This document shows positions 7,285-58,063 of a stretch of 64,000 nt of DNA, piece after piece. The notes below the pieces were generated by a model, which was given only the letters and a program-made list of their open reading frames with translations, did no database searches and was not told the origin of the DNA. Location of the stretch: NCBI GenBank assembly GCA_973895155.1, contig OZ316897.1:12113832-12177831 (forward strand), read 5' to 3'. A program made the position numbers and the translations under genes. Position 1 is the stretch's first letter. Every line of letters starts with the position of its first letter. The DNA is from Marsupella aquatica. Taxonomy: Eukaryota > Plantae > Marchantiophyta.

Positions 7285-10200
7285 TTACATGTCACTAGCG
7301 AGATCTGAATTCTTGAACTTCTGATGACAGTCGGCGCAGATCCAAACAACACCATGGAGAGAACCATCGTTGTAATTCAAACACACCCTTCTAAGTCCTA
7401 ACTTCTCCTCGTAGGTCTCCGGTGTCAATTTCCCTATCAGACTGGTGATGGCTGCTCTACTCTTTCCATACACATCTCGAGGGTTCAAGGGGGGGCCAGT
7501 ACGACCAAGTCCCAGGCCCTCAGTCATCAGATTATTTAATTCTGCCATTGAGTACCCGGTGGCCAAGATGATTCCATCTGCCAGTGATTTTCCTTGCTTC
7601 AAATGCTTGAAATCGGGCATAAGCAAACCCACCCCAGGCCACACGACAGTCGTTGCAAATTTGGCAGTGATTGAGAGAAATGTTAGCGACACTATGAGCC
7701 ACGGGATGAGTGTTTTCAGGGCTGGCTTTAGGTCGGAAACAATGATCCCTAGCTGCCCCTCAACATGATGCGGTGCGTAAGTATTGTACATGGCCTCACA
7801 TGCAAATTGCAAACGAACATTGACAGAGAAAGCCTCCTTCAATGTAGCCATCGCACCAGAATCTCTTGTCCCCAGATATATGAGGTTTGGGCAGGTTCTG
7901 TCCTTGTCTTCTTTGAAAAATCTGTGTGTGTCTTGAAGCTTCTGAAACACCCGTTTTTGCTCCTTCAAAACCTCTGCAAATCTATCTCGAAGAATCCTTT
8001 CGACAATCTTCACCTCCGCCAACGTTTCATCCTGGTTTTTCAGAATCTTGTCCAGCTTCTGATGTACTCCATGGAATGGCCATATCAGGTGGAATAGCCG
8101 TTCCCTGTTACCTGGAGATTTCCGACTAGTAGGGTTCAGTGCTTCCTCCTCCACCTCCTCGCCATCTGTTGAGACGTCGAATCCTTCAGTCAACTTGGGT
8201 GGATAGATTCCCAGGTTGACAGCTTCTTGCATTCCTTGCCTCAAAACTTTGAGATCATTCTTTCCGGACTTGACCACATCCTTTTTGTCCTCCGTGGACA
8301 GTAGCTGATCTTCTGTTATTGCCCCCGTTATGACAGAGTCACGGCCCACATAGCCGCCTACAGACCACTGCATTTCTCTTCCCATGCCGTGCCTTTGTAC
8401 CCACTTCTTCACTTGAGCCACTTCCACATTTCTGTCTGGCTGGTACACCGGTCTAGTAGACTGGGAAACCGGCCAAGGCCAAACCACTTTCTGCACGTAC
8501 TGAACCCCTCCACATATCTCATTCCACAAGTCCAGCAGTATGTTGACAAGATCATCAGCCAGGTTCACTTGGCATTGTTTCCTCTGGATCATATCCAACT
8601 TGTCTTTCCTGAACTGTGGCTTTACAAAGATACTAATCTCGTCAAATGTGGGAGAGTCCTTTTCGGCGTTCACCTCAATCTTTACGTTCATGTAGTCATT
8701 TGTAAACGTCATGGAATACTTACCAGCAACAAAGTCGTTGTCTGGGACATCTCCATTATTGAACTCTGGGCTCTGCGCAAGCTGAACCTGAAATCTGTGC
8801 CACAACGACATTGGTGCTAGAGTCTTCTCCTTTTTCTGGTGCTGAATTGAGAAACCCATTACCCACTGCTCTTCTCCATCCTCATGTTTGCTCTCAGATT
8901 TCCACGCATCTCCAGGTTCCAAATTTATATCAATGAGAGACGGTATAAACACTTTGTCCTCCTTGCCCTTGTAGCACAATCCCAACCAAAGCAAGATAGC
9001 AATGAAATCTTCACATTTTTGGGAACCCCATGTAGCTTCAAAGAAGCTCTTGAAAGCAGACATTGAAATAGAACCTGTAGTCGCATCCAGTTTTTTTCTA
9101 AAGATATGGTCGCCCTCTGCACGCTTGACCATATCTTCAGAAAGGAACATATTTCCTATAATTTCCTTGCAGAACCAGTTCGGATTGAGGATAATAAGCC
9201 TTGGAGAAGGGATATTCCACTGAGCAGGAAAGTTCTTGTCAACGTATATCAGGACTCCAGCTTGGTCCAGATATTTAGTTGCTGATAGAATTATTTGCTC
9301 AGGCCACTCTCGTAATTGTTGAACCATATCCACGAATGCTTCCCAACCTAGCACAGGGAACTCCTTCATTGCCTCACTCCAAACAGGGAGGCATTTTTGA
9401 ATGACAACACAGATATCCGGAACCATCTGGTTTGCAAGCATTTTTCTGCAATGCTCAAAGAGACATGTCTTAAAACCTTCGACTTTCTCTCTTATCCTAA
9501 CATCCACTATGAAGGGATCAGTACGAACATCCAAAAGGCCAGTAAATTTAGCCCTCTTTTCCTCAAGCAGCACCTTCCAATCTTGGCTGTTTCTCTGTAC
9601 CTGTTTGCGACCTCCCATGTTGTTCAGGACAACAAAGACATGTCGGGTTTGTCTGGTGGCCGCATGGTAGCTCGATGCAATGTAACGTAACCAGTAATCA
9701 AGTTGCATCTTGACCTCATCTGCTGGACAACTGGAGTTGCAAACAATAACAAATATAGTAGCTGCTCCTTGAGAGGTGGAAGCCTTTCCTCCTGAGCAAC
9801 TTAAAGCGGAAAAGAAAGCATTGTGCACCAAATGATAATCTTGCTGGCCAGCCATGTCCCAAACCGAGAGTGTTATTCGATTTCCTGTGTTGCTACATTC
9901 GCTGACGATTTCGGAGACATCAATGCCTCTGGTGCGGGTCTCCCTATGAGGCCACGTTTCCAATGTAAATAGTGATCTTAAACGTGTCCTTTGCAACGTA
10001 TTACAAAGTGTTGTCTTCCCCATCTTTGGATCCCCACATAGATAAATCTTTCCAAAGGCAGCGGGGACCATGGAAAAGCTCGAGAGCCCCGCTAAAATTT
10101 CCTTGTTTTTGATATTGCGCTTCCTTAGTTGCTGATATTGGCGTCTCAATTCTGAAAACTCGAACCAGTCAAAATTCAATCGGACAGTGAGAGTGTTGTT

Positions 10201-11124: not shown

Positions 11125-13777
11125 GGAGCAACATCTGGATGTCCATCCTGCTGTCCCGATCCACTTTTATCATCGGAGTGATGAAAGTGTTCCCCTTCTG
11201 TTCCCTGCAACTCTTCTTTGCTATACTCTTCACCCGTCACTCCATTCGAGCCCTCTCTTGGATCCTTCAAATTAACTCCATATAGTACCCTCTCCAACAG
11301 GATACCTCCTCTGAAATCGCACAAGTCTGTCGCCAAATGGTCTGAAGAAACTGAACGCGGAGCAGTTACATCCGGCCAGTCAATTGCCGCACTCAGATCA
11401 CCGATGGTTCTTGCTTACCTGGTGGTTGCACCTCCCGCCATTATCCTCCAGAATGGTCAAACAGCTCGAGGAGATTGATTCAGCTTGATGCTTCTCGAAT
11501 CCTCGGAGGTTGCCAGTGCTGATTGGACCTGAGCAAGCCTTTTTCTTCGCAAACTGTTGGCAGAGCGTACGCAACAATTACTTGACACCAGTCTGACTGC
11601 AGCCAGCTCGAGTTGAACATGCAAGTCAGTGTAATCGCCATTGATGTCGTGTTTTGGCCAACGTTGGATCCGGAAAGCAATGTAAAACGCGCTGAGCTCT
11701 ACTTGCCTGGGACAGACCTTGACACTGCATTCGACACTGAGAAGGATTTAGCTTTGGGCTAGTAACATTGACAGTATAGACAAGAAATTGTTTCTACGAC
11801 GGCTGTTGAGAGTGATCGATTGAAAATTGACCTACTCCTGAAGCAGCTATTAATATATATTCAATCCTAGGAGAGACGGAGACTTGTCTGATTACCGAGA
11901 CAGTAGTTAGTAGCCAAGCGCATGCCTTTGCCGTATTTAATCTCGTTTCGAGTTGGCTGAAATATAACAACCATAATCCCGGAATTGTCTCTGCCGCACA
12001 GTTTGATCAACCAAAGAGTACAATTGATCAGCGATGAAAAGGGGATAATCAGAAGCTAGAATTCTCCAGGGAATATCGAGAGCTTGGTTGAGGTACAATT
12101 GGGGAGGGGGAAAGCACCAATCAATCCGAACTATCAGAGTTTCGTCATGATCGTTCTATCCAGGGCACAGGCCGGATGTACATAGAATCCATAGATCGAG
12201 AGAAAGACGACCCAATCCATGGGTCGCGTCCTAGCTTCCTAAGAATTCAGATTCGCCAGACATCATACGGTTAGCAAGGACAGAATGACTAACCTGAACG
12301 AGCGCCCCACTAGAGGATATTTCCATCCAGTCACGTTGAAAAAGAAAGCTTTCGTGAACAGTGGGCACAGGCCGTAGCATCAAACTCGGAATGATTTCAG
12401 GCCTACAACTCGAGCAAACACATGATCGCCATACACAAAGTCCGTGCACAAGGGTCCCGATCGAGAGAACGTGTCATGGAATTGAACGTTTCGTAGTCTG
12501 TGCAACTTGATTTTGGCTATGGATGTTGTACTCGCCACATTTTCTTGCTCCCCAGTCTAAATAAACAAGCTAAGGGACTGACCCGCAACTTTTCAGAGAC
12601 TTTGCAAAAAACCAGGTGCTTGATTTTGACAACTTCTCAGGCTGCCTTCCAGACAGACTCGTTAGTGCACTGGACTCGTGACACCACAGTCCCCTCTCTG
12701 GAAGCTTGAATCCCCGTGATGAGTTTGTTGCAAACCAAGACCGGACTTGTGGGTTCAGTGACAAAAGCGATTGAAAGAGTAAAGCAGCAGTGAGGTCACT
12801 CAGCCCAATGTACAACTTAACCAACAGAACGAATTGGCAATCCCTAGACTTCAAAACTTCAGAGAGTCTTTCCAGTTTCTCAACATTCTAGCATGAAACT
12901 TTACTCGTTCTGATGCGAAGAGCTAACAACAAGAACGATGGAGGGTCTATCTGAAGTGCTAGTAAAAGTAGACTTCTAGTGAATTCGATGTGAACGCCAA
13001 AAAATTAGTCGAACCGATGTTGTTGACTCAGCTGTCCACGAGCTCACGGTGGACCGGAACTACAATGATTGTGCTCAGAACGACCGTAAATTGCTGAATT
13101 TCGGGCGCCCAACTGGGATCAACTGCAGATTGTTCATCGCATAGAGATTGGGCTAAGCTAGTGTAGTGTACTTCCGAACTTCGATTATGGCCCGGTGAAA
13201 CTGCAGAATATCTACCTACCATTATTATGCCATAACTCTCTCTGCAAAGCTATGACGTTTGGTATTATTCACGTCGAATGACAGTATCGAGGCTCATTAA
13301 TGATCTCTGCACAGTATCGACTATCGAGCCTCTCTGCAAAGCTATGACGTTTGGTATTATTAAGGTCGAATGACAGTAGCGAGGCTCATTAATGAGCCTC
13401 GCACGCTCTTTGCCGTGGCCATCCCGGTCCGCTGCCCGAGATAATGCGCGATTGCAATTTTTTTTTGAAATATCAAAGGTACTGAATGAACACCCACTGT
13501 TACAACGAGGAGTGGTGTGCCTGGCAGGATTCGAGCCTTGCTGGTACCCAACTGTGGTCATATACCACTGAAGCAGCATCAACTGCACCGAAGAGAAGTT
13601 TTGTTTTGTCAAATTATCTCAATAGGACGATCGGGCAATCCTGCGGGCAATGGTCTTTCTAACCGTACGAATTTTAGCATTAATATGCATCGATAGTGCC
13701 AATCGCTCTAAATTTTGTATTATGTAACCTGATTACCGTTACTTCAAGATAATTAGAGATGGTGTCCCCCTAATTGC
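11125..13777 (-). promoter_or_regulatory. Upstream/5' region of Roco copy 1, homologous to the upstream regions of copies 2-4
   Basis: Collinear similarity to ~25575-28171, ~43055-45240 and ~57920-58617, for example the shared blocks gtcaattgccgcactc, tcaaccaaagagt and ccagtcacgttga. Confidence 0.7.
13512..13580 (-). other. tRNA-like or SINE-head-like fragment within a copy-1-specific insertion
   Basis: Minus strand reads ...CAGTGG (A-box-like)...GGCTCGAATCC (B-box/T-loop-like) TGCCAGGCACACCA. I could not fold a convincing cloverleaf. Confidence 0.3.
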
Positions 13778-15815: not shown

Positions 15816-15818
<3 letters not shown>

Positions 15819-15864: not shown

Positions 15865-16599
15865 GGCTGCAGAGCCAAAGCAATGCAAAGTGAGAGCAGG
15901 GTCTGATGTTTTGCTCCACCCAGATGAAATTCATCGCACCCCCAAAAGAAAATAAATACAATTCCGCCACCCCCCTGTAAAAGAAAACTAAACTCTGGGT
16001 AAGACTGGAGGAAGGAAAGCTGTGTCAATAAGTTCACTAATCCTCTCCTGGAAACTGATAGCCTTGTTTGTGGTTTCAATTTCTAAGTGGATCTTGCATA
16101 TCCTCTCCCAATAACTCTGGCTCATGTTTATTACTCACAAAGAATATCCTCATCCACTGTAGTTTGAGTTGTACCCAAGAGATTGTTAGTGATAGGCAGA
16201 GAAACCTGTACTAGGGTCACTCATTTGGCTCCATGGTCTTCCTGGGGTTTTCCTTCTCCTATCTTTATTGGGTTCTGGACTTTGGGTTGGTGTTTCCTGG
16301 TTTGGTGCCTTTTGTTCTTTGGTAGTTTATATGACATGTTAATTCAATTCCATGACATTGAATTAGAACAGAAAGTGTAAAGAAATGAATCAAAACCCAA
16401 AGGAGCCCCGGCCCAACAATCAAATGCTATAGTAGTGGGCGCTCGAACCAACGTGACAAGTTTCTGTAGGGCCTCCCAAGTCACGATAGGTGATAAGAAA
16501 GGTCATGGGTAAGAGGGATTATTAGTGGGGCAGGTGGAATCTGGAGCATATGGCTGACAAAAAGGACCCCACTGTGGTGGAAGCATCTCAGGTTGCAAA

Positions 16600-17430
16600 A
16601 TAATGACTCGTGTTAACAACTGGTTACTAAGAGATTCTATCCCTTCAGGTGTGTTTGACAAACTTGACACTTCGTTGGAAGATTCAAGGAAAGTATCAGC
16701 TTCGAGAAGACTCCTCTTGGCCAATAGCTTTTTAAGACAAAATAGTGTTATCTCTTGCTAACAAATGGTTGCTAAGAGATTCTCTCCCTTCAGCTGCGTT
16801 TGACAAACTTGACACTTCGTTGGAAGCTTCAAGGTAAGTATCAGCTTCGAGAAGACTGATCTTGGACAATAGCTTTTTAAGACAAAATAATGTATCTCTT
16901 ACTAACAAATGGTTACTAAGAGATTCTCTTCCTTCAGCTGCGTTTGACAAACTTGAGCTTCAAGGAAAGGTATAAGCTTCGAGAAGACTCATCTTGGCCA
17001 ATGGCTTTATAAGACAAAATAATGTATCTCTTGCTAACAAATGGGTACGTAAAGATCCTCTACCTTCAATTACGTTTGATAAGCTTGATACTTTGTTCGA
17101 CGCTCCTAGGTGATTATCAGCTTCGAGAAGATTCATCTTCGCCAGCAGATCACTTGAGACAAAATATTGACTCTCTTGCTAACAAAATGGTTACTAAAAG
17201 ATTCTCTCCCTTCAGTTGCGTTTGGCAAACTGAATACTTCTTTGGAAGCTTGAAGAAGACTCATCTCGTCTTGGTTAGTAAATAATTAAGACAAAGTAAT
17301 CACTCTACTGGTAACAAATGGTTACTAAACGATTGTCTCCGTTCAGTGCGTTTGACAAACTTCAGACTTCCTGGGAAGGTTCAAGGTAAGTATAAGCTTC
17401 GAGAATTTTCATCTTGGCCAATAGATTATC
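16600..17430. repeat. Degenerate tandem repeat, ~144-bp unit x ~6
   Basis: Motif taacaaatggttactaagagattctctcccttcagctgcgtttgacaaacttg recurs at ~16614, 16758, 16902, 17035, 17180 and 17312. Related units lie at ~18620-18740 and 59090-59437. Confidence 0.85.
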
Positions 17431-18807
17431 TAAGATGAACCCCAATAGCGAGGTGAGTTAATTCCATGTGCCTAACCGCAGACTGCTGCGAGAGCCTCGT
17501 TGAATGGAATAGTACGTTAAGAACTAGTAGACAAAACTTTTGTTGACTGGGAGATGATGTCTATTGGAAGGCACAGGTCGGATCTGGCTAGCTGCACGAA
17601 ACTTCTCTTCAAGACAAACCGAATACTCTGGATCGACGGTAGTAGAACTTGACTACGTCTAGTTTATTTTATTCTGTCTGGAATGGAGTACCTGGACCCC
17701 AAGACGGAGTCAAGAGATCTACGAGAAAGACTCTACGAGAATTTTAGATTGAGTCTTTTCTGCCAACTTTCTTGGGAAGTTCATATGAGGAGATCGCAGT
17801 TGCTTACTCTGCGTCAGCTTGGCATCCACAAATCCTACATATTTCCACCTTGGCCAATAGATTGTGAAGAGTTTGCCAGGAATATGACTTCATCGTATGT
17901 TTTTCTTTGTCTTTCTATCCATGAAGCTTTGGCATTCGTGTCCTAGTGGGTCCAGGACATGCAGTGACGGAAACAAAAATACAGGTTCCTTCGAATTGCT
18001 CAAGGCGAAGGAGACCCCCTCTTCTACCTTTTTCTTTGTGGAGCGGAAAGTAGAAAGAGAAAGCATGTGTATTGCAGGGGACGAGGAGAGTCAGCGTTAA
18101 GGTATTGTGGTGGGGAAATTCTCAAGGTGAGCCCAAAATTTTGAAGTCCAGCAAAGGGCACGAAGCTCGGGAGAGACCTTTGTTTCCCCCAGATTTTATT
18201 TCCCAGCGCACTACCCGTAGATAGGCGATGAATTTCTCGACATTTCTGACAAATTTCAGGAGCCTGGGTTACCATTGGAGAAGCTCAACAGACCGATCTC
18301 ATGAGTCGTGGAGCCACAATGGTTCAGCGGCAGCCCATTAGAAATATGAACCGACTCTAATGTAGTGTGACGGTCCAATTGTCCATTCGTATAACAAACA
18401 TTCCTTTCTCATGAAGCAAAAAGGAGGACGGACCCAACAATCAAAAGCGACTGTAGCTTGGTGGGCTATCGGCACAACTTGCCAAGTTCCTATAGGGCAG
18501 CGCCCGGTGACCGAAAAGGTCACGGGTAAGAGCGATCAATGGGCCGGGTGGAATCTTGAGGGGATGGGAGCAAGGTTGCAGCATCACTCTACCTAATCTT
18601 CAGGGCGGGAAAATAATGGTTGCCATGGTCATAAATCGTTACTAAAAGATTTTCTCTTTGACAAAGTTGATACTCATTTGGAGGCTTCAAGGTCATTATC
18701 AGGTCCGAGAAGGTTCGGCTTGGCCGATAGATTGTGAAGACTGAAGAGTCTGCAAGGATTGGATTCAATAGAATGATGATATCTTGTCTTTATTGTACAT
18801 GCCAGCG

Positions 18808-22022: not shown

Positions 22023-25000
22023 TTACATGTCGTTAACCAGATTAGACTTCCTGAACTTCTGATGACAGTCGGTGCAGATCCAAACAACACCATGGAGAGA
22101 ACCATCGTTGTATGCCAAACACACCTTTCGAAGTCCTAACTTCTCGTCGTAATCCTCTGCTGTCAATTTTCCTACTAAATTAGTGATGGCTGCTCTACTC
22201 TTTCCATACAAATCCTGAGGGTTCAAAGGGGGACCAGTAGGATCAAGTCCCATGCCCTCAGTCATCAGCTTATGTAATTCTGGCATTGAGTACTCGGTGG
22301 CCCAGACGATTCCATCTAACACTGATTTTCCTTGCTGTACTTGCTGGAAGTCGGGCAGTAGCAAACCCGCCCCAGGGGCTACGACATTCACTGCAATTTT
22401 TGCAGAGATTAAGAGAACTGTGAGTGACACTTTGAGCCACGGGACAAGTGTTTTCAGGGCCGGCTTGAGGTCTGAAACAACCAGGCCCAGCTGGTCCTTG
22501 ACTTGATGCGGTGTGTAACTATTGTACCTGGCCTCACATGCAAATTGCAAACGAACATCGACACTTGGTGACAAAGCCTCCTTCAATGTAGCCCTTACAC
22601 CAGAATCTCGTTTCCCTAAATAGATGAGGTTTGGGCAGGTTCTGTCCTTGTCTTCTTTCAGAAATCTGTCAGTGTCTTGAAGCTTCCGAAACACCCTTTT
22701 CTGCTCCTTCAAAACCTCTGCAAATCCCTCCACAAGCATCCTTTCAACATTCTTGACCTGCATGTAGATGTTAACCTGACTGTTCATAATCTTATCCAGC
22801 TTCTCATCCATATTGTGCAGCTTTCTGTTAACAGTTGATAATCTTTGCATCTTCTCGGCAGTTGGAATTGTAGGTGGATTAGGCATTTCAATGCCATCCG
22901 ATGCCAGTGCCGGCTCCTCCACCTTGTCCCCGTCTGTTGAGATATCCGACTCCTCAGTTAACTCGGGTGGATAGATTCCTAGGGTGACAGCTTCCTGTAA
23001 TCCTTGCCTCAAAACATTCAGGTCGTTCTTTGCTGACATAATCACATACTTTTTGTCCTTTGTGGACAGCAGCTGATCTTCTGTTATTGCAGAGTCATAG
23101 CCGACACGCCACTGCATTTTTCTTCCCATGCCATGCACTTGGACGCACTTCTTCACTTCAGCCACTTCCACATTTCTGTGCTTCATGTACCCTTCTTGTC
23201 TAGACTGGGAAACAGGCCAAGGCCAAACCACTTTCTGCACGTACTGAACCCCTCCACAAATCTCATTCCACAGGTCCAGGAGTATATTGACCAGATCATC
23301 AGCCAGGTTCACTTGGCAGTTTTTCCTTTGGATTGCATCCATCTCGTCTTTCCTGAATTGGGGCTTCACCAAAATGTTGATCTCATCAAATGTGGGAGAT
23401 TCCTTTTTGGCGTTAACCTCAATCCTTACTTTCATGTAATCCACTGTGAACGTCATGAAATACTTACCAGCAACAAAGTCATTGTCTAGGACATTTCCAT
23501 TGTTGTACTCTGGGCTCTGAGCAAGCTGAACCTGAAATCTATGCCACAAGGAAATTGGTGTTAGAGTCATCTCCTGTTGCTGGTGCTGAATAGAGAAACC
23601 CATTACCCACTGCTCCTCTCCATCATCATGTTTGCTCCTAGACTGCCACCCATCTTCAGGATCCAAATTCCCATCAATAAGAGATGGTATAAACACTTTG
23701 TCGTCCTTGCCCTTGTAGCACAATCCCAACCATAGCAGGATAGCAATCAAAGCTTCACAATCTTTGAGACCCCACCTAGCTTGAAAGAACACCTTGAAAG
23801 CATACATTGAAATAGAACCTGTGGTCGCATCCAGTTTTTTTCTAAAGATATGGTCGCCCTCTGTACGCTTGACCATATCTTCAGAAAGGAACATATTTCC
23901 TATAATTTCCTTGCAGAGCCAGTTTGGATTGAGAATAATTAGCCTTGGAGAAGTGTTTCCCCATTGAGCAGGAAAGCTCTTGTCAACGTAGATTAGGACT
24001 CCAGCTTCATCCAAGTATTTCGTTGCCGATAAAATTGTTTGCTCAGGCCACTCACGTAATTGGTCCTTCTGCATGAATTCTTCCCAACCTAGCACAGGGA
24101 ACTCCTTACGTGCCTTACTCCAAATAGGAAGGCTAGTTTGAATGATGTCACAGATATCCGGAACCATCTGGTGTTCAAGCAATTTTTTGGAATCCTCTAT
24201 GAGACATGTCTTAAAACCATCTGCTTTCCATCGTCTCCTAACATCCACTATAAAGGGATCAGTTCGAACATTCAAAATGCCAGTAAACTTATCTCTCTTT
24301 TCCATAAGCAGGACCGCCCAATCTTGGCTGTTTCTCTGTACCTGTTTATCTCCTCCCATGTTGTTCAGGACAACAAAGACATGTCGGGTTTGTCTGCTGG
24401 CCTCGTGGGAGCTCGATGCAATGTAACGTAACCAGTAATCAAGCTGTTTCTCGACCTCATTTGGTGGACAGCTGGAATTGCAAACAATGACAAATATGCT
24501 AGATGCTCCTTGAGAGATGGTAGCGTTCCTATCTGAGAGACTTAAAGCAGGGAAGAAAGCATTGTGCACCAAATGATAATCTTCCTGTCCTGCCATGTCC
24601 CAAACCTGGAGTGTTATTGGGTTTTGATTTTTCCACTTGCTACCTTTGCTGCCGATTTTGGAGACATCAATGCCTCTTGTGCGGGCCTCCACGTGAGGCC
24701 TCGTTTCCCATGTCCATAGTGATCGCCAAAGTGCCCTCTTCAATGTATGACAAAGTGTTGTCTTGCCCACTTTTGGATCCCCACAAAGATAAATCTTTCC
24801 AAAGGCAGCTGGGACCATGGAACAGCCCGAGAGGCCTGCTAAAATATCCTTGTATCTGGTATTGCGCTTCCTTAGTTGCCCACATTGGCGTTCCAATTCT
24901 GGAACTAGGAACCACGGATACCTCAGGACGTTGACAGTGAGAGACTTGTTTAGGGCGAATGCAGACACTAAAGCAGTGGCGCCTTCTTCACAAGGGTTGG

Positions 25001-39506: not shown

Positions 39507-42500
39507 TTACATGTCGTTAACCAGATTAGACTTCCTGAACTTCTGATGACAGTCGGTGCAGATCCAAACAACACCATGGAGAGAACCATCGTTGTATGCC
39601 AAACACACCTTTCGAAGTCCTAACTTCTCCTCGTAGGCGTCTGCTGTCAATTTTCCTACTAAATTAGTGATGGCAGCTCTACTCTTTCCATACAAATCCT
39701 GAGGGTTCAAAGGGGGACCAGTAGGATCAAGTCCCATGCCCTCAGTCATCAGCTTATGTAATTCTGGCATTGAGTACTCGGTGGCCCAGACGATTCCATC
39801 TAACACTGATTTTCCTTGCTGTACTTGCTGGAAGTCGGGCAGTAGCAAACCCGTCCCAGGGGCTGCGACATTCGCTACAATTTTTGCAGAGATTAAGAGA
39901 ACTGTGAGCGACACTTTGAGCCACGGGACAAGTGTTTTCAGGGCCGGCTTGAGGTCTGAAACAACCAGGCCCAGCTGGTCCTTGACTTGATGCGGTGTGT
40001 AACTATTGTACCTGGCCTCACATGCAAATTGCAAACGAACATCGACACTTGGTGACAAAGCCTCCTTCAATGTAGCCCTTACACCAGAATCTCGTTTCCC
40101 CAAATAGATGAGGTTTGGGCAGGTTCTGTCCTTGTCTTCTTTCAGAAATCTGTCAGTGTCTTGAAGCTTCCGAAACACCCTTTTCTGCTCCTTCAAAACC
40201 TCTGCAAATCCCTCCACAAGCATCCTTTCAACATTCTTCACCTGCTTGTAGATCTTATCCTGACTGTTCATAATCTTATCCAGCTTCTCATCCATATTGT
40301 CCAGCTTCCTGTTAACAGTTGATAATCTTTGCATCTTCTCGTCAGTTGGGCTTGTAGGTGGATTCGCCATTTCAATGCCATCCGATGCCAGTGCCGGCTC
40401 CTCCACCTTGTCCCCGTCTGTTGAGATATACGACTCTTCAGTTAACTCGGGTGGATAGATTCCCAGGGTGACAGCTTCCTGTAATCCCTGCCTCAAAACA
40501 TTCAGGTCGTTCTTTGCTGACATAATCACATACTTTTTGTCCTTTGTGGACAGCAGCTGATCTTCTGTTATTGCAGAGTCATAGCCGACATGCCACTGCA
40601 TTTTTCTTCCCATGCCATGCACTTGCACCCACTTCTTCACTTCAGCCACTTCCACATTTATGTGCTTCATGTTCCCTTCTTGTCTAGACTGGGAAACCGG
40701 CCAAGGCCAAACCACTTTCTGCACATACTGAACCCCTCCACAAATCTCATTCCACAGGTCCAGGAGTATATTGACCAGATCATCAGCCAGGTTCACTTGG
40801 CAGTTTTTCCTTTGGATCACATCCATCTCGTCTTTCCTGAATTGGGGCTTCACCAAAATGCTGATCTCATCAAATGTGGGAGAGTCTTTTTCGGCGTTAA
40901 CCTCAATCCTTACTTTCATGTAATCCACTGTGAACGTCATGAAATACTTACCAGCAACAAAGTCATTGTCTGGGACATCTCCATTGTTGAACTCTGGCCT
41001 CTGAGCAAGCTGAACCTGAAATCTATGCCACAACGACATTGGTGCTAGAGTCATCTCCTTTTGCTGGTGCTGAATAGAGAAACCCATTACCCACTGCTCC
41101 TGTCCATCATCATGTTTCCTCCTAGACTGCCACCCATCTTCAGGATCCAAATTCCCATCAATAAGAGACGGTATAAACACTTTGTCGTCCTTGCCCTTGT
41201 AGCACAATCCCAACCATAGCAGGATAGCAATCAAATCTTCACATTCTTTGAGACCCCACCTAGCTTGAAAGAACACCTTGAAAGCATACATTGAAATAGA
41301 ACCTGTGGTCGCATCCAGTTTTTTTCTAAAGATATGGTCGCCCTCTGTATGCTTGACCATATCTTCAGAAAGGAACATATTTCCTATAATTTCCTTGCAG
41401 AACCAGTTTGGATTGAGAATAATTAGCCTTGGAGAAGGGATACCCCATTGAGCAGGAAACCTCTTGTCAACGTAGATTAGGACTCCAGCTTCATCCAAGT
41501 ATTTCGTTGCTGATAAAATTGTTTGCTCAGGCCACTCACGTAATTGCTCCTTCTGCATCAATTCTTCCCAACCTAGCACAGGGAACTCCTTACTTGCCTC
41601 ACTCCAAATAGTAAGGCTCGTTTGAATGATGTCACAGATATCCGGAACCATCTGGTGTTCAAGCAATTTTCTGGAATCCTCTATGAGACATGTCTTAAAA
41701 CCATCTACTTTCCATCGTCTCCTAACATCCACTATAAAGGGATCAGTTCGAACATTGAAAATGCCAGTAAACTTATCCCTCTTTTCCATAAGCAGGACCG
41801 CCCAATCTTGGCTGTTTCTCTGTACCTGTTTATCTCCTCCCATGTTGTTCAGGACAACAAAGACATGTCGGGTTTGTCTGGTGGCCTCGTGGTAGCTCGA
41901 TGCAATGTAACGTAACCAGTAATCAAGCTGTTTCTCGACCTCATTTGGTGGACAGCTGGAATTGCAAACAATGACAAATATGGTAGCTGCTCCTTGAGAG
42001 ATGGTAGCGTTCCCATCTGAGAAACTTAAAGCGGGGAAGAAAGCATTGTGCACCAAATGATAATCTTCCTGTCCCGCCATGTCCCAAATGTGGAGTGTTA
42101 TTGGGTTTTGATTTTTCCTCTTGCTGCCTTTGCTGCCGAGTTTGGAGACATCAATGCCTCTTGTGCGGGCCTCCACGTGAGGCTTCCTTTCCCATGTCCC
42201 TAGTGATCGCCAAAGTGCCCTCTTCAATGTATGACAAAGTGTTGTCTTCCCCACTTTTGGATCCCCACAAAGATAAATCTTTCCAAAGGCAGCTGGGACC
42301 ATGGAAGAGCCCGAGAGCCCCGCTAAAATATCCTTGTATCTGGTATTGCGCTTCCTTAACTGCTCATATTGGCGTTCCAATTTTGGAAACATGAACCACT
42401 CAAATTCCACGTTTACAGTGAGAGACTTGTTTAGGGCGAAAGCAGACACTAAAGCAGTGGCGCCTTCTTCAGAAGAGGTTGAAGTTCGCACATAAACGAT

Positions 42501-43196
42501 CTCCAGTGAATCAAGGCGACCAGATTTAAGGGCCTCCACTAACGACAGCAGGCCCACATTTGTGAAACGATTCCCGTCAAGATTCAACTGTTCTAAATTT
42601 GGCATGACGGTGACGTCGCCATATTGGAAGGCGGTTGCCAGCGTAGCCATGTCATCGTCATTGATGCTAGTCTGCCAGAGATAGAGATGGGTCAACTTCT
42701 CCAAATTACCGGATTGAATTGCACGTCCAAGAGCTTCGACGCCTTTGGTTCCTACCGCGTTCCAATCAAAGTCAAGTTTCCTCAAAGATGGAAATTTTGC
42801 TGAAGCCAGAGCATTGCTGACTGCCTCACTACGATCGTCCTCTAACCCGGTTTGGTCAAGCGACAAAGCTTCCAATGCAGACATTTGACCAGTTGCCAGA
42901 GCCTCGGCAAGGATGAAGTGTCCACTCCCAATATCCTGTCGGTCTAGGTCGATGGATGTCACTTGCGTCAGATTGCCGCGCTTGATGGCGTCGCGTAGTT
43001 CCTTCATACTTATAATTTTGATCCGACTGCTGCTGCCAGTGCTAGCCGCCTCAGGCGCGACGTCTTGACGCCCAGCCTGCTGCCCCGATCCAGTTTTATC
43101 ATCGGAGTCACGAAAGTGTTCCCCTCCTGTTCCCTGCGAGTCTTCTTGCGAAGACTCTCCACCCGTCACTCCATTCGCGCCCTCTCTTCGATCCAT
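39507..43196 (-). CDS. LRR-ROC-COR (Roco) protein, TORNADO1-like, copy 3
   Basis: Uninterrupted ORF; first ATG (MDRREG) at 43196; same motifs as copies 2 and 4. Confidence 0.9.
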   Translation of the reverse strand: MDRREGANGVTGGESSQEDSQGTGGEHFRDSDDKTGSGQQAGRQDVAPEAASTGSSSRIKIISMKELRDAIKRGNLTQVTSIDLDRQDIGSGHFILAEALATGQMSALEALSLDQTGLEDDRSEAVSNALASAKFPSLRKLDFDWNAVGTKGVEALGRAIQSGNLEKLTHLYLWQTSINDDDMATLATAFQYGDVTVMPNLEQLNLDGNRFTNVGLLSLVEALKSGRLDSLEIVYVRTSTSSEEGATALVSAFALNKSLTVNVEFEWFMFPKLERQYEQLRKRNTRYKDILAGLSGSSMVPAAFGKIYLCGDPKVGKTTLCHTLKRALWRSLGTWERKPHVEARTRGIDVSKLGSKGSKRKNQNPITLHIWDMAGQEDYHLVHNAFFPALSFSDGNATISQGAATIFVIVCNSSCPPNEVEKQLDYWLRYIASSYHEATRQTRHVFVVLNNMGGDKQVQRNSQDWAVLLMEKRDKFTGIFNVRTDPFIVDVRRRWKVDGFKTCLIEDSRKLLEHQMVPDICDIIQTSLTIWSEASKEFPVLGWEELMQKEQLREWPEQTILSATKYLDEAGVLIYVDKRFPAQWGIPSPRLIILNPNWFCKEIIGNMFLSEDMVKHTEGDHIFRKKLDATTGSISMYAFKVFFQARWGLKECEDLIAILLWLGLCYKGKDDKVFIPSLIDGNLDPEDGWQSRRKHDDGQEQWVMGFSIQHQQKEMTLAPMSLWHRFQVQLAQRPEFNNGDVPDNDFVAGKYFMTFTVDYMKVRIEVNAEKDSPTFDEISILVKPQFRKDEMDVIQRKNCQVNLADDLVNILLDLWNEICGGVQYVQKVVWPWPVSQSRQEGNMKHINVEVAEVKKWVQVHGMGRKMQWHVGYDSAITEDQLLSTKDKKYVIMSAKNDLNVLRQGLQEAVTLGIYPPELTEESYISTDGDKVEEPALASDGIEMANPPTSPTDEKMQRLSTVNRKLDNMDEKLDKIMNSQDKIYKQVKNVERMLVEGFAEVLKEQKRVFRKLQDTDRFLKEDKDRTCPNLIYLGKRDSGVRATLKEALSPSVDVRLQFACEARYNSYTPHQVKDQLGLVVSDLKPALKTLVPWLKVSLTVLLISAKIVANVAAPGTGLLLPDFQQVQQGKSVLDGIVWATEYSMPELHKLMTEGMGLDPTGPPLNPQDLYGKSRAAITNLVGKLTADAYEEKLGLRKVCLAYNDGSLHGVVWICTDCHQKFRKSNLVNDM

Positions 43197-46100
43197 TGGA
43201 TTAACCCGATATCGTACCCTCCGACAGGTTCCTTCCTCTAAATCGCACAAGCAGCTCTGTCGTCAATTGGTCCCAGGAAATTCAAGCGGATCAGTTTGAT
43301 CCAGCCAGTCAATTGCCGCACTCAAATCACCGATGGTCCTGGGTACTTGGTGATAGAACCTCCCACCAGACTTTCTTTATCCTCCAGAATGGTGAAACAG
43401 CTAGAGCAAATTGATTCAGTTCGATGCCTCTCGAAGTCTCTCGAATCCCCGACTGTTGCCAATGCTGATTGGACCGGAGCAGGCCTTTTCTCCCACCAAG
43501 GTGTTGAGGAGAGTACAGAACCACCAGTAGCGCCTGAAACCAGCTCGATTGGAACATGCAAGTCAATGTAACCGTCATTGATGTCGTGTTTCCAACGCTT
43601 TTTATTTCCGGCAAACGCGGGACTCTTCATGTGCATGAGACAGACCTTCGACACTGCATTCGTGAAGACGTTTGGATTTGACTGAAAAGAGGACAAAAGT
43701 TTGGACTAGCAGCATTGATCGTGTAGACAAGGATTGTTTCAAGATGTTGTGAATGATCGATTGAAAATTGACCTACTACGCTAACATATTCAATCCTACG
43801 ACAGAGGGAGACTTGTCTGATTACCGAGACATTACTGACGCATGCTTTGCCGATTTGAGTAAGCTGAAATGGAACGATCCTGATCCCGGCATTGTTTCTG
43901 CCGCACAGGATGATCAACCAAAGAGTGCAATTAATCAGCGGTGAAAATGGGAAATTGAAAGCCAAAATTCTCCAGGGGAATGTTGAGAGCTTGGTGGAGG
44001 CGCAGTTGGTGATGGGGAAACATTAAAATCAAACCGAACTATCAAAGTTTAGTCATGATCGTTCTACCTAGGACACAGGATGTAAATAGAATCTATAGAT
44101 CGAGAGGATGACGACCCAATCCACAGGCCGCGTCCTTCTTAAGAATTCAGATTCGCAAGGCAGATTAAACATTCAGCATAGAGAAGATGACTTACCTGAA
44201 CGAGCAACATACTCGAGGAAATTTTCATCCGGGCTTTCATCCAGTCACGTTGACAAACCAAAGCTTGCCTGAACACTGGCAGCAGCATTCAACTCGGAAT
44301 GAGTTCACGCCTACAACCAAGCACATGGTGGCCGTATAGGAAGTCACTGCACAAGGAGTGGATGTGTCATGGAACCTTTCGTAGTCTCTGCGAATTGATT
44401 TTGGCCATGGATGTTCCCTGGATGTTGTACTACGCACATTTCGTTGCTGATATGCCTGTATATACAACCTAAGGGACAACTGACCCGCAAGCTTTAGAGA
44501 CTTTGCTTCATTTTATTGAAGAGATCAATGTGAAAACCCGTTGCTTGATTCAGATAACTTCTCCGGCTACCTTTTAGATAGACTCATTTTACACCGCTGG
44601 ACTAGCGAAGCCACAGTCCCGTCTCTGGAAGCACGTGATGCGTTTGTTGCAGAACAATATCCGATTTGGGGTTCAGTGACAAAGGCGATCAAAAGAGTAA
44701 AGCGGCAGTAAGTTGCCCGATTTGCAACTACATAACTAACTATTCCTCGACTTCAAAACTTCAGAGAAATTCAGGGACTCCTTCCATTTTGTGAACATTA
44801 TAGTAAGAGACTTCTCTACTTCTCATGAGAATAGCTTGTCACAACAGTGATAGAGGAGGGTATGTCTGGATGCTGTAGAAGTTCACTTCTAGTAGTAGAT
44901 TCGATGTGAACGCCAAAATAATATTCGATCCGATGTTGTTGACCGAGCTATCCACGAGCTCACAAAGGACCTGTCCTTCATGATTGTGCTCCCGAACAGT
45001 AGTTCCAGACTTGCAGGTCAGCTTGGGAAACGGCAGAAGTGCAGAGAGTACCTTTCTACCGATGTCATTAATAATCCAGTAACAAGGTGTACTGTTGCAG
45101 CCTGATTTTAATTTGTCTTTTCTTAAACCGAAACCTTCTGACAAGTATAAGAAACCATTGTCCAAGCTAATTTGACCGAATTGCGGTCTTTCCAGGAGCT
45201 GCTAAAGTGGCACATAGATGCACACCTGACTTCCATGCAAGTTGGAGTGGTGGGGTCTCGCCACAGCTTGCCAAGTTACTGTAGGGGCTCGCAGTCAGGA
45301 TTGGTGACAGAAAAGGCCATGGGTAAGGAGGAGCATTGGACCCGGTGGAATCTAGAGGGGCGGCAAAATAATATCTCTCATCGTACTAACTTTTAAAGAG
45401 CGAAGAGAAGCTAGTGTTGGGGTCTAGGGGTTAGGGTGAGACGTGAGGAGTTCAACTGGACATATCCTATCGTCTGGCGTGTACCTCTTTCAACACGTTA
45501 ATAAAAAGCGCGGGACCCCACAATAAAAACCGGTGGAATGGTGGGCTCCTGAGACAACTTGCCAAGTTACTGTAGGGCCTCGCAAGTCACGCTGATGACC
45601 AAAAAAGGTCATGGGTTCTTAGGATGACTGGGCCCGGTGGAATCTAAAGGAGTTGGGTGACGAAGAGCCTACGGTAGGTAGCAGCATCATTCTACCTAGT
45701 CTTCAGGGCGGCAAAGTACTAACAATCGAGGGATTTGCTTAATCAGCTTTTTATCAACCTGTCCCCTAACTTGCCTAAATTTCTAAGGTGTCCCCCAAAC
45801 AAATTTACTTGCTTCCCTGCCCCCCATACCTTATCCGGGTTAGTACTAACCCAACTTTGGGTTCCCAGTGCCAGGTGTCATGGTGTGATTGGCCCAGACT
45901 AACCTGCTTGAGTTAAGCTTCCCCCTCCCTGTGGCGGCCCATTTTGGAAGCAGGCTTCGCTTCGCTTTAGACCCGGGAGGAAGCACAGCCCGAATACACA
46001 GCCCTTGCAAAATTCAGCCCTCCCCACTTTAATGCAGCCTGAGCACGCAGCATCTACTTCCCGGCCCCGTTAAGGGTCGTGGGGTTTTCTTAATGCCTCT

Positions 46101-54367: not shown

Positions 54368-57300
54368 TTACATGTCGTTAACCAGATTAGACTTCCTGAA
54401 CTTCTGATGACAGTCGGTGCAGATCCAAACAACACCATGGAGAGAACCATCGTTGTATGCCAAACACACCTTTCGAAGTCCTAACTTCTCCTCGTAGGCT
54501 TCTGCTGTCAATTTTCTTACTAAATTAGTGATGGCTGCTCTACTCTTTCCATACAAATCCTGAGGGTTCAAAGGGGGACCAGTAGGATCAAGTCCCATGC
54601 CCTCAGTCATCAGCTTATCTAATTCTGGCATTGAGTACTCGGTGGCCCAGACGATTCCATCTAACACTGATTTTCCTTGCTGTACTTGCTGGAAGTCGGG
54701 CAGTAGCAAACCCGTCCCAGGGGCTACGACATTCGCTGCAATTTTTGCAGAGATTAAGAGAACTGTGAGCGACACTTTGAGCCACGGGACAAGTGTTTTC
54801 AGGGCCGGCTTGAGGTCTGAAACAACCAGACCCAGCTGGTCCTTGACTTGATGCGGTGTGTAACTATTGTACCTGGCCTCACATGCAAATTGCAAACGAA
54901 CATCGACACTTGGTGACAAAGCCTCCTTCAATGTAGCCCTTACACCAGAATCTCGTTTCCCCAAATAGATGAGGTTTGGGCAGGTTCTATCCTTGTCTTC
55001 TTTCAGAAATCTGTCAGTGTCTTGAAGCTTCCGAAACACCCTTTTCTGCTCCTTCAAAACCTCTGCAAATCCCTCCACAAGCATCCTTTCAACATTCTTC
55101 ACCTGCTTGTAGATGTTATCCTGATTGTTCATAATCTTATCCAGCTTCTCATCCATATTGTGCAGCTTTCTGTTAACAGTTGATAATCTTTGCATCTTCT
55201 CGGCAGTTGGGCTTGTAGGTGGATTCGCCATTTCAATGCCATCCGATGCCAGTGCCGGCTCCTCCACCTTGTCCCCGTCTGTTGAGATATCCAACTCCTC
55301 AGTTAACTCGGGTGGATAGATTCCCAGGGTGACAGCTTCCTGTAATCCTTGCCTCAAAACATTCAGGTCGTTCTTTGCTGACATAATCACATACTTTTTG
55401 TCCTTTGTGGACAGCAGCTGATCTTCTGTTATTGCAGAATCATAGCCGACACGCCACTGCATTTTTCTTCCCATGCCATGCACTTGCACGCACTTCTTCA
55501 CTTCAGCCACTTCCACATTTCTGTGCTTCATGTACCCTTCTTGTCTAGACTGGGAAACCGGCCAAGGCCAAACCACTTTCTGCACGTACCGAACCCCTCC
55601 ACAAATCTCATTCCACAGGTCCAGGAGTATATTGACAAGGTCATCAGCCAGGTTCACTCGGCAATTTTTCCGTTGTATAACATCCATCTCGTCTTTCCTG
55701 AATTGCGGCTTCACCAAAATGCTGATCTCATCAAATGTGGGAGAGTACTTTTCGGTGTTAACCTCAATCCTTACGTTCATGTAATCCACTGTGAACGTCA
55801 TGAAATACTTACCAGCAACAAAGTCATTGTCTAGGACATTTCCATTATTGAACTCTGGGCTCTGAGCAAGCTGAACCTGAAATCTATGCCACAAGGACAT
55901 TGGTGCTAGAGTCATCTCCTTTTGCTGGTGCTGAATAGAGAAACCCATCACCCACTGCTCCTCTCCATCATCATGTTTGCTCCTAGACTGCCACCCATCT
56001 TCAGGATCCAAATTCCCATCAATAAGAGACGGTATAAACAGTCTGTCGCCCTTGCCCTTGTAGCACAATCCCAACCATAGCAAGATAGCAATCAGATCTT
56101 CACAATCTTTGAGACCCCACCTAGCTTCAAAGAACTCCTTGAATGTATCCATTGAAATAGAACCTGTGGTTGCATCCAGTTTTCTTCTAAAGATATGGTC
56201 GCCCTTTGTAAGCTTGACGATATCTTCAGAAAGGAACATATTCCCTATAATTTCCTTGCAGAACCAGTTCGGATTGAGGATAATAAGCTTTGGAGAAGGG
56301 ATACCCCATTGAGCAGGAAAGCTCTTGTCAACGTTTATCAGGACTCCAGCTTGGTCCAGATATTTAGTTGCTGATAAAATTGCTTCGTGAGGCCAGTCCT
56401 CACGTAATTGCTCAACCTTCTCCACAAATTCGTCCCAACCTAGCACAGGGAACTCCTTCCTCGCCTCACTCCAAATAGGAAGCCTTTGTTGAATGACATC
56501 ACAGATCTCGGGAACAATCTGTTCTTTAAGCAATGTTCTGGAATGTTCTAAGAGACATGTTTTAAAACCATTGACTTTCCCTCTTCTCCGAACATCCACT
56601 ATAAAAAGATCAGAACGAACATCCAAAAGGCCAGTAAACTTTTTCCTCTTTTCCTTTAGCAGCACCTCCCAATCTTGGCTGTTTCTCTGTACCTGTTTAT
56701 GTCCTCCCATGTTGTTCAGGACAACAAAGACATGTCGGGTTTGTCTGGTGGCCTCGTGGTAGCTCGATGCAATGTAACGTAACCAGTAATCAAGCTGTTT
56801 GTCGACCTCATTTGGTGGACAGCTGGAATTGCAAACAATGACAAATATGGTAGCTGCTCCTTGAGAGATGGTAGCGGTCCCATCTGAGAAACTTAGAGCG
56901 GGGAAGAAAGCATTGTGCACCAAATGATAATCTTCCTGTCCCGCCATGTCCCAAACCAGGAGTGTTATTGGGTTTTGATTTTTCCTCTTGCTACCTTTGC
57001 TGCCAATTTTGGAGACATCAATGCCTCTTGTGCGGTCCTCCACGTGAGGCCTCGTTTCCCATGTCCCTAGTGATCGCCAAAGTGTCCTCTTCAATGTATG
57101 ACAAAGTGTTGTCTTCCCCACATATGGATCTCCGCATAGATAAATCTTTCCAAAGGCAGCTGGGACCATGGAAGAGCCCGAGAGCCCCGCTAAAATATCC
57201 TTGTATCTGGTATTGCGCTTCCTTAGTTGCTGATATTGGCGTTTCAATTTTGGAAACATGAACCACTCAAAATCCACTTTTACAGTGAGAGACTTGTTTA

Positions 57301-58063
57301 GGGCGAATGCAGACACTAAAGCAGTGGCGCCTTCTTCAGAATGGCTTGAAGATGGCACACAAACGTACGCCAGTGAATCAAGGCGACCAGATTTAAGGGC
57401 CTCGACTAACGACAGCAGGCCCACATTTGTGAAAGGATTCCCGTCAAGATTCAACTGTTCTAAATTTGGCATGACGGTGACGTCGCCATATTGGAAGGCG
57501 GTTGCCAGCGTAGCCATGTCATCGTCATTGATGCCAGTCTGCCAGAGATAGAGATGGGTCAACTTCTCCAAATTACCGGATTGAATTGCACGTCCAAGAG
57601 CTTCGACGCCTTTGGTTCCTACCGCGTTCCCATCAAAGTCAAGTGTCCTCAAAGATGAAAATTTTGCTGAACCCAGAGCATTGCTGACTGCCTCACTACG
57701 ATCGTCCTCTAACCCGGTCTCCCCAAGCGACAAAATCTCCAATGCAGACATTTGACCAGATGCCAGAGCCTCGGCAAGGGTGAAGTGTCCAATCCCAATA
57801 TCCTTGAGCGCTAGGTCGATGGCTACCACTTGCGACAGATTGCCGAGCTTGATGGCGTCGCGTAGTTCCTCCATACTGCTAATGTAGATCTGAGTGCTGC
57901 TGCCAGTGCTAGCCGCCTCAGGCGCGACGTCTTGACGCCCAGCCAGCTGCCCCGATCCAGTTTTATCATCGGAGTGACGAAAGTGTTTCCCTCCTGTTCC
58001 CTGCGACTCTTCTTGCCTAGACTCTCCACCCGTCACTCCATTCGCGCCATCTCTTCGATCCAT
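54368..58063 (-). CDS. LRR-ROC-COR (Roco) protein, TORNADO1-like, copy 4, 1231 aa
   Basis: Uninterrupted ATG-started ORF; GDPYVGKTT, WDMAGQ, COR; C-terminus nearly identical to copies 2 and 3. Confidence 0.9.
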   Translation of the reverse strand: MDRRDGANGVTGGESRQEESQGTGGKHFRHSDDKTGSGQLAGRQDVAPEAASTGSSTQIYISSMEELRDAIKLGNLSQVVAIDLALKDIGIGHFTLAEALASGQMSALEILSLGETGLEDDRSEAVSNALGSAKFSSLRTLDFDGNAVGTKGVEALGRAIQSGNLEKLTHLYLWQTGINDDDMATLATAFQYGDVTVMPNLEQLNLDGNPFTNVGLLSLVEALKSGRLDSLAYVCVPSSSHSEEGATALVSAFALNKSLTVKVDFEWFMFPKLKRQYQQLRKRNTRYKDILAGLSGSSMVPAAFGKIYLCGDPYVGKTTLCHTLKRTLWRSLGTWETRPHVEDRTRGIDVSKIGSKGSKRKNQNPITLLVWDMAGQEDYHLVHNAFFPALSFSDGTATISQGAATIFVIVCNSSCPPNEVDKQLDYWLRYIASSYHEATRQTRHVFVVLNNMGGHKQVQRNSQDWEVLLKEKRKKFTGLLDVRSDLFIVDVRRRGKVNGFKTCLLEHSRTLLKEQIVPEICDVIQQRLPIWSEARKEFPVLGWDEFVEKVEQLREDWPHEAILSATKYLDQAGVLINVDKSFPAQWGIPSPKLIILNPNWFCKEIIGNMFLSEDIVKLTKGDHIFRRKLDATTGSISMDTFKEFFEARWGLKDCEDLIAILLWLGLCYKGKGDRLFIPSLIDGNLDPEDGWQSRSKHDDGEEQWVMGFSIQHQQKEMTLAPMSLWHRFQVQLAQSPEFNNGNVLDNDFVAGKYFMTFTVDYMNVRIEVNTEKYSPTFDEISILVKPQFRKDEMDVIQRKNCRVNLADDLVNILLDLWNEICGGVRYVQKVVWPWPVSQSRQEGYMKHRNVEVAEVKKCVQVHGMGRKMQWRVGYDSAITEDQLLSTKDKKYVIMSAKNDLNVLRQGLQEAVTLGIYPPELTEELDISTDGDKVEEPALASDGIEMANPPTSPTAEKMQRLSTVNRKLHNMDEKLDKIMNNQDNIYKQVKNVERMLVEGFAEVLKEQKRVFRKLQDTDRFLKEDKDRTCPNLIYLGKRDSGVRATLKEALSPSVDVRLQFACEARYNSYTPHQVKDQLGLVVSDLKPALKTLVPWLKVSLTVLLISAKIAANVVAPGTGLLLPDFQQVQQGKSVLDGIVWATEYSMPELDKLMTEGMGLDPTGPPLNPQDLYGKSRAAITNLVRKLTAEAYEEKLGLRKVCLAYNDGSLHGVVWICTDCHQKFRKSNLVNDM

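Follow-up and report, generated by a model that had tools for sequence, protein, structure and literature searches.

Probable diversifying selection on the concave leucine-rich repeat face of four tandem, TORNADO1-related Roc-COR genes in the liverwort Marsupella aquatica

The stretch of DNA analyzed here, referred to as the window, spans 64,000 nucleotides of contig OZ316897.1 from the liverwort Marsupella aquatica. It contains four long open reading frames (ORFs) on the minus strand, all of them intact and intronless, and each made up of one uninterrupted frame of ~3.6 kb encoding about 1,190–1,230 amino acids. The genes lie ~15–17 kb apart and code for proteins with an N-terminal leucine-rich repeat (LRR) domain, a predicted Roc-COR unit, and a C-terminal module. 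When the window was compared with itself using blastn, copies 2–4 were found to be 93–94% identical in nucleotide sequence across 5–6 kb, flanks included, while copy 1 was about 83% identical to them over the gene. The divergence of the flanks and a gene-wide synonymous divergence (dS) of ~0.02–0.11 mark copies 2–4 as recent duplicates. As far as can be judged from sequence, the locus is a tandem array of four intact paralogues that form a liverwort-specific relative of the plant gene TORNADO1 (TRN1). The original prediction for this locus proposed that variation among the copies is concentrated at the exposed positions of the LRR beta-strands and that it reflects diversifying selection on recognition specificity. 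The follow-up described below leads us to a probability of roughly 80% that the concave LRR face has been under diversifying selection. Each LRR contains six nine-residue LxxLxLxxN motifs, and the positions of the genes, LRR domains, and motifs are as follows.

7285–10866, minus strand: copy 1 (c1), 1193 amino acids, LRR-Roc-COR-C-terminal module, the diverged member of the array
22023–25715, minus strand: copy 2 (c2), intact, start placed at the ATG common to copies 3 and 4
39507–43196, minus strand: copy 3 (c3), intact, start placed at the ATG shared with copies 2 and 4
54368–58063, minus strand: copy 4 (c4), intact, 1231 amino acids
10130–10794, minus strand: LRR of copy 1, c1 residues 25–246, eight beta-strands predicted by DSSP at a model confidence (predicted local distance difference test, pLDDT) of 85–93
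10705–10731, 10618–10644, 10528–10554, 10438–10464, 10339–10365, and 10249–10275, minus strand: LxxLxLxxN motifs of copy 1
24870–25543, minus strand: LRR of copy 2, where nucleotide divergence from copies 3 and 4 peaks at 0.10–0.175
25455–25481, 25368–25394, 25278–25304, 25188–25214, 25089–25115, and 24999–25025, minus strand: motifs of copy 2
42355–43024, minus strand: LRR of copy 3
42936–42962, 42849–42875, 42759–42785, 42669–42695, 42570–42596, and 42480–42506, minus strand: motifs of copy 3
57225–57891, minus strand: LRR of copy 4, with repeats 4 and 5 identical to those of copy 3
57803–57829, 57716–57742, 57626–57652, 57536–57562, 57437–57463, and 57347–57373, minus strand: motifs of copy 4

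Several types of search contributed to the domain assignments. A Pfam scan covering the c1 and c4 proteins placed Roc (PF08477) in both, with E-values of 4.4e-10 and 2.1e-9 and scores of 40.3 and 38.1 bits, respectively, against a cut-off of 27 bits. It also detected LRR_6 (PF13516) in copy 4 at 26.6 bits, above the 23.4-bit cut-off. No NB-ARC or NACHT STAND domain was detected in the two proteins at E<=0.01, and matches to fish NLR proteins covered only 5–15% of the query, corresponding to the LRR part. In a phmmer search against solved structures, the LRRs of RanGAP1 and ribonuclease inhibitor (RI) were matched along with the Roc domain of LRRK2. The COR-A match in c1 reached 22.2 bits, under the 35.3-bit Pfam cut-off; the presence of COR after Roc is supported by a Foldseek search with an AlphaFold model of c1, which was built from a 17-sequence alignment. 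This search returned LRRK1, LRRK2, and the C. tepidum LRR-Roc-COR crystal structure (E 3e-20 to 1e-15), including alignments of ~850–930 columns to these proteins at E 3e-20 to 2e-17, and matched the RocCOR tandem 3dpu at E 2e-13. PF16095, precomputed for Calypogeia and Marchantia relatives, also bears on the COR assignment. Within the Roc domain, the P-loop GxxxxGKT, the switch I motif RTRGI with its Thr, and DxxGQ are all kept. Each of the four genes carries NNMG at G4 (c1 residues 414–417, window 9616–9627, and the same columns in copies 2–4). The G4 motif is NNIG, NSFE, or NCIN in other liverwort members, THFD in moss relatives, and THMD in Salvia TORNADO1, and the Asp that confers guanine specificity ([N/T]KxD; THxD in LRRK2 and TRN1) has been lost throughout the liverwort clade. 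A protein-atlas search with the C-terminal 344 residues yielded no usable match, and Pfam yielded none. These residues have coiled-coil, hydrophobic, and Cys/His character, and the sole lead for this module is homology to the TRN1 C-terminus. Copy 1 differs from the others at its 5' end, where an extra ~280 bp (about 10843–11123) absent from copies 2–4 splits the leader from the gene body. The displaced Gly/Asp-rich N-terminal leader (11124–11324, minus strand) is 63% identical to c3 residues 1–66 and ends in an in-frame stop. The ATG of the copy 1 ORF, at 10866, is located near the end of the insert, which is either spliced out or truncates the protein.

The nearest proteins to the four copies are seven from Calypogeia fissa with 50–62% identity, four of which are encoded on one contig. 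Marchantia proteins follow at 28–33% identity, and then Ceratodon proteins at 21–23% (E 5e-24), which themselves match angiosperm 'Protein TORNADO 1' at E 3e-94. Direct comparison of c1 with Salvia Protein TORNADO 1 by BLASTP gave an alignment of 957 columns at 21% identity (E 8e-21, c1 residues 221–1099), running from the end of the LRR through Roc and COR to the C-terminal coiled-coil/hydrophobic region. In a quick maximum-likelihood tree with midpoint rooting, in which Riccia forms a long branch, the four window genes fall in one group nested among the Calypogeia paralogues, and a branch with 100% SH-aLRT support splits the liverwort sequences from the moss and angiosperm TORNADO1 clade. 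The genes thus probably represent a liverwort expansion related to TORNADO1 rather than TORNADO1 orthologues. Public sequencing data point to additional family members. Seven runs with matching content were found, none recorded as RNA; in four of them, roughly half of the sampled words were present. For the region 39400–43300 (3,901 bases), these four runs, from two studies and with two organism labels, yielded only assembled pieces of 100–390 bases, whose depths add up to hundreds and which contain many variant letters. The family is therefore present in these data in fragmented form, and the pieces suggest a large family of near-identical copies.

To describe where the copies vary, we defined the x positions as motif positions 2, 3, 5, 7, and 8 of the six LxxLxLxxN motifs, giving 30 in total. 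All 24 of the nine-residue motifs quoted in the original prediction occur exactly in the translations and inside the LRR spans given above. The three intervening segments it called invariant indeed do not differ between the four proteins, although their codons show a few synonymous changes. Among copies 2–4, variation affects 26 of the 30 x positions. The corresponding counts are just 4 of 24 in the scaffold, 25 of 151 in the remainder of the LRR, and 121 of 954 in the downstream rest of the protein, a contrast well outside chance expectation. The proportion of nonsynonymous differences (pN) is 0.31–0.62 at motif positions 2, 3, 5, 7, and 8, drops to ~0.05 at positions 4 and 6, and is for the most part under 0.1 at other positions, a profile that reproduces the in/out alternation of a beta-strand. 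The corresponding synonymous proportion (pS) is high at positions 7 and 8. Changes of several nucleotides are common at x positions, as had been noted: between c2 and c3, 16 of 25 changed x codons differ at 2–3 bases, while outside x the count is 9 of 126 changed codons. The number of repeats does not vary among the four copies, and copies 3 and 4 share repeats 4–5 while differing in repeats 1–3 and 6. In every pair except c3–c4, 25 of the 30 x positions differ, such that the x positions are saturated and do not scale with backbone divergence. The hypervariability of the x positions is therefore confirmed, mainly for positions 3, 5, 7, and 8. Position 2 fits less well because its posterior probability of selection exceeds 0.9 only in repeat 6, although it shows amino acid differences in four of six repeats. 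The flanks of copies 2–4, described earlier as near-identical, are similar but not identical, with 1.5–6% divergence downstream and 4–10% upstream.

The model of c1 places this variation on one surface. Its pLDDT is 85–93 in the LRR, mostly 70–90 in Roc-COR, and below 50 for most of residues 881–1193. The LRR is of the ribonuclease-inhibitor (RNI-like) type, with eight modelled strand-helix units spaced 20–33 residues apart, and in Foldseek it superimposed on the LRRs of RI, NOD2, and NLRP proteins (NLRP1) with a root-mean-square deviation of 3–4.5 Å. In an LRR solenoid, the concave sheet exposes positions 3, 5, and 7 of LxxLxLxxN to solvent, and the loop begins at position 8, along that rim. 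All 19 LRR sites assigned to the selected class (see below) lie between one residue before and three residues after a predicted strand, a zone that makes up 64 of the 222 LRR residues, and none is found among the 81 helix residues (Fisher p = 6e-12). Surface mapping made use of model DSSP, strand register, and known LRR geometry rather than measured solvent exposure. On this basis, the predicted clustering of the variable sites on one surface appears to hold. In copy 1, residue 51 (window 10714–10716), the normally buried L6 of the first motif, is Arg, while copies 2–4 have Leu; the first strand of copy 1 may be irregular.

Selection was assessed by codon likelihood with a purpose-written GY94/F3x4 program applied to the four sequences, using naive empirical Bayes posteriors. 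The non-coding flanks of copies 2–4 served as a neutral yardstick (divergence 0.015–0.06 downstream and 0.04–0.10 upstream), against which the LRR reaches up to 17.5%. By the NG86 counting method, nonsynonymous divergence (dN) at x positions is 0.87 for c2–c3, 1.03 for c2–c4, and 0.30 for c3–c4, with gene-wide dS of 0.067, 0.113, and 0.083, respectively. A tree-free comparison of nonsynonymous differences at x with synonymous differences elsewhere gave ratios of 9.2, 5.8, and 3.3 for the same pairs (Fisher p = 2e-23, 2e-19, and 2e-5), with p = 2e-7 for c3–c4 when the background was restricted to the LRR. Site models agreed with these counts. M2a was preferred to M1a under all three four-taxon topologies (twice the log-likelihood difference, 2dlnL, 84–95), with 5–6% of sites at a dN/dS ratio (omega) of 7.7–9.0, and the M8 versus M8a comparison called for by the original prediction gave a 2dlnL of 84–95 for the whole gene (two topologies run) and 99.8 for the LRR alone. 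Twenty-one sites had a posterior above 0.9, 16 of them among the 30 x positions (Fisher p = 4e-24). The others are c1 residues 27 and 29 in the N-terminal cap strand, 231 in the C-terminal cap strand, and two in Roc: residue 300 (window 9967–9969; F/W/G/G), in a low-confidence loop after the P-loop helix, and residue 334 (window 9865–9867; S/Q/H/L), in the strand just before DxxGQ, which is variable in Calypogeia too. When the x positions were fixed as a class in advance, omega at x was ~10 and the background 0.56 (likelihood-ratio statistic against omega_x = 1, 152–173). Giving this class its own synonymous rate provides a conservative test that addresses both local hypermutation and old, imported divergence. 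The rate multiplier was 1.4–1.6 (not significant), omega_x was 6.2–6.8, and omega_x = 1 was still rejected (2dlnL 11, p = 9e-4). NG86 omega within the x class (1.1–2.4) was dropped as the main measure in favor of this free-rate likelihood because path-averaging in multi-hit codons inflates dS.

A similar pattern was observed outside Marsupella. Among the seven Calypogeia fissa paralogues taken alone, mean column entropy is 2.00 bits at x positions; scaffold positions average 0.47, the remaining LRR 0.96, and Roc-COR 0.71 (Mann-Whitney p = 9e-12). This provides independent support. In summary, the solvent-facing residues of the LRR strands (positions 3, 5, 7, and 8, sometimes 2, and the two cap strands) have nearly all been replaced, at about ten times the synonymous rate, while the buried Leu/Asn scaffold and the helices are conserved. 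Site models, the a priori partition, and the tree-free tests agree on diversifying selection at the x positions, with omega well above 1, as had been predicted.

The copies are also mosaic. In LRR repeats 4–5 (codon columns 181–240), 13 informative sites group copies 3 and 4, while in Roc-COR 24 informative sites group c2 with c3. A tract of copy 4 at the Roc-COR junction (~56329–56729) differs from copies 2 and 3 at 0.12–0.175 per site, as compared with 1.5–6% in neighboring sequence, and carries the copy 1 state at 24 informative sites; the tract resembles the product of gene conversion by a more divergent paralogue. The LRR and Roc-COR differ in their nearest relatives, and recombination between copies therefore adds to LRR diversification. 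It does not create the selection signal, since the M2a result holds under all three topologies. A tblastn search of the 64-kb window with the copy 3 protein recovered only the four genes and the displaced copy 1 leader, and no donor LRR cassettes or pseudogene fragments.

How such proteins might work can be outlined from their parts. The LRR would be the sensor, with a specificity diversified between paralogues; that the selected face determines recognition specificity is something we infer. Ligand binding at the LRR would be passed to the Roc-COR unit, proposed to act as a nucleotide switch because its P-loop, switch I, and DxxGQ are conserved, and the switch would then act on a conserved TRN1-type C-terminal module as the output. 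The likeliest setting would be recognition of fast-evolving non-self molecules, for example pathogen effectors, in which case the array may, without being NLR-based, parallel the NLR clusters of plants and the LRR-ROCO genes of brown algae. An immune-receptor role is plausible but unproven. In its fullest form, the proposal is that intracellular immune receptors of a second, non-NLR class exist in liverworts, with a TORNADO1-like ROCO protein as their chassis. An RI-type LRR would sense pathogen molecules, Roc-COR with an altered base-specificity motif would transduce the signal, and the C-terminal module would execute the response (e.g. at a membrane), with new specificities arising by rapid substitution and recombination of strand units in tandem arrays. 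We put this forward tentatively, at somewhat less than even odds.

Several points weigh against these readings and are considered here along with the explanations that they favor. The selection analysis is limited to four sequences, our own likelihood code, and naive empirical Bayes posteriors, and rate estimates for the x positions are rough since these positions are saturated. In addition, the copies are mosaic and recombination can inflate site-model tests; we therefore rely on consistency across topologies together with the run restricted to the LRR, the partition fixed in advance, and the tree-free tests. The background omega of 0.56 is high, and ~45% of sites fit omega = 1, as might be seen if constraint were relaxed and exposed positions drifted neutrally or the copies were decaying. 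Neutral drift cannot, however, outpace synonymous sites or the flanks, and pN at x is 3–9 times the background pS. Moreover, the 2dlnL of 152–173 rejects omega_x = 1, the four 3.6-kb frames stay open despite 5–17% nucleotide divergence, indicating constraint, and a model with a ~7-fold higher synonymous rate at x codons and omega = 1 fits worse by 5.5 log-likelihood units. We consider relaxed constraint the least probable of the explanations, and a targeted or multi-nucleotide mutational process acting at x codons without selection on the protein only marginally more probable. The latter could explain the excess of 2–3-base changes at x and the high pS at motif positions 7 and 8, but the changes track strand register (3, 5, 7, and 8, not 4 and 6) in all eight strands despite their differing DNA contexts, omega remains 6–7 in the free-rate model, and the transition:transversion counts (43:72 in x codons and 228:286 in others) show no special signature. 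We know of no targeted mutation mechanism of this kind in plants. A somewhat better case, though still an improbable one, can be made for the diversity at x being old, either because strand cassettes were imported from other paralogues by short-tract gene conversion or because the backbone was homogenized by concerted evolution. Close and distant copies are equally saturated at x, the mosaicism described above is real (repeats 4–5 of c3/c4, Roc-COR of c2/c3, the diverged copy 4 tract), the invariant inter-strand segments could act as homology anchors, and the short, deep contigs of the four sequencing runs suggest many near-identical family members. The apparent NG86 dS inside x codons is also raised, to 0.27–0.65, part of which is a path-counting artefact. 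On the other hand, scaffold codons located one or two codons from x codons, like the rest of the LRR, have low synonymous divergence (dS 0–0.11, as compared with 0.05–0.11 gene-wide), and conversion tracts cannot skip single codons. Furthermore, no donor cassettes are present in the window, and omega_x = 1 is rejected with a free rate whose multiplier is not significant. Short-tract import or multi-nucleotide mutation may nevertheless contribute, because x-codon dS is raised and 2–3-base changes are common. Regardless of how the variants arise, x codons show an excess of amino-acid-changing over silent differences.

If diversifying selection is accepted, it might still have acted on endogenous partners, through sub- or neo-functionalization in developmental or cell-biological signalling or through self/non-self or mating-type recognition. 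TORNADO1, the one plant relative that has been studied, is a gene of development (cited in PMC3341825), and it is homologous to the array genes across Roc-COR and the C-terminal module (E 8e-21). Moreover, no ligand, phenotype, or pathogen link is tied to the array. Arguing the other way, it would be unusual for endogenous ligand pairs to show an omega of 6–10 and a binding face fully replaced between duplicates that have diverged by just 2–10%; the family resembles those in arms races in its tandem arrays, mosaic recombination, and expansion within one lineage, and the clade is separate from true TORNADO1. Overall, we regard endogenous partners as unlikely, though as the most serious of the alternatives. 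Two further points count against the proposed immune mechanism. With G4 reading NNMG rather than THFD or THMD, the nucleotide or base specificity of Roc may differ and a classical GTP switch is not assured. Also, the sequencing runs that were found are unlabelled and give short assembled contigs that cannot show expression, alleles, or copy identity.

The spacers between the genes hold transposon remains, with the following features recognized.

32165–33145, minus strand: MULE/Mutator transposase
33899–35536, plus strand: copia-type reverse transcriptase
60423–61424, plus strand: copia gag with a Pol beta-barrel domain

Satellite-like internal repeats are present at 16146–17435 and also at 58615–59437 and 28581–29013, with offsets of ~140–420 bp and 75–89% identity. 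One satellite-like stretch occurs both in the spacer that follows copy 1 and upstream of copy 4, and a short direct repeat with 98% identity is found at 28581–29013.

Intracellular immunity in plants is thought to rest almost wholly on NLRs. The array presents a land-plant Roc-COR GTPase family with the signature of an arms-race receptor: omega of 6–10 restricted to the concave side of the LRR, expansion in tandem, and mosaic recombination. Should the genes sense non-self, the brown-algal idea of the ROCO protein as a receptor would extend to embryophytes, a clue would be gained to the role of TORNADO1's own LRR and C-terminal module, and the genes would hint at a new chassis for engineered recognition. 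The array also offers natural swap experiments, because copies 3 and 4 are alike in repeats 4–5 and unlike in repeats 1–3 and 6.

Literature searches, within the paper library covered, found no paper linking ROCO proteins with bryophytes or liverworts. The best structural matches over LRR-Roc-COR are LRRK2, LRRK1, and the C. tepidum Roco protein, in which the P-loop, the switch I Thr, and DxxGQ are likewise kept. The liverwort genes differ from them in lacking kinase, ankyrin, armadillo, and WD40 domains, in having another C-terminal module, and in the loss of the G4 Asp; to our knowledge, none of the three has a hypervariable LRR. TORNADO1 of Arabidopsis, together with its moss and angiosperm relatives, shares the homologous Roc-COR-C-terminal part and an N-terminal RI-type LRR. 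However, the liverwort LRR has about half the length, NNMG or NNIG replaces THFD at G4, and the genes fall in a clade of their own; they are also multi-copy, tandem, and hypervariable in their LRRs, whereas TRN1 is known as a developmental gene. With plant NLR clusters they share tandem arrays, inter-copy recombination, and dN/dS>1 at the exposed residues of xxLxLxx on a conserved scaffold. They have no NB-ARC, NACHT, or other STAND domain, the switch being a Roc-COR small-GTPase module, and their LRR is N-terminal rather than C-terminal and of the RI/animal-NLR type rather than the plant-specific type.

The closest precedent is provided by the LRR-ROCO candidate pathogen receptors of brown algae. 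In Ectocarpus and Saccharina (Zambounis et al. 2012), M2a and M8 assigned the positively selected sites to the concave side of the LRR, with about four such positions in each repeat; each 24-residue LRR occupies one exon, and exon shuffling and alternative splicing diversify the genes (PMC3341825; PMC11378527). Both systems combine an LRR-Roc-COR architecture with clustered, fast-turnover families and selected concave LRR sites, and in both an immune role is proposed only. Unlike the algal genes, those of the liverwort are intronless, have RI-type repeats of 27–33 residues in fixed number, and diversify by substitution at x codons together with inter-copy recombination, and they belong to a land-plant lineage related to TORNADO1.

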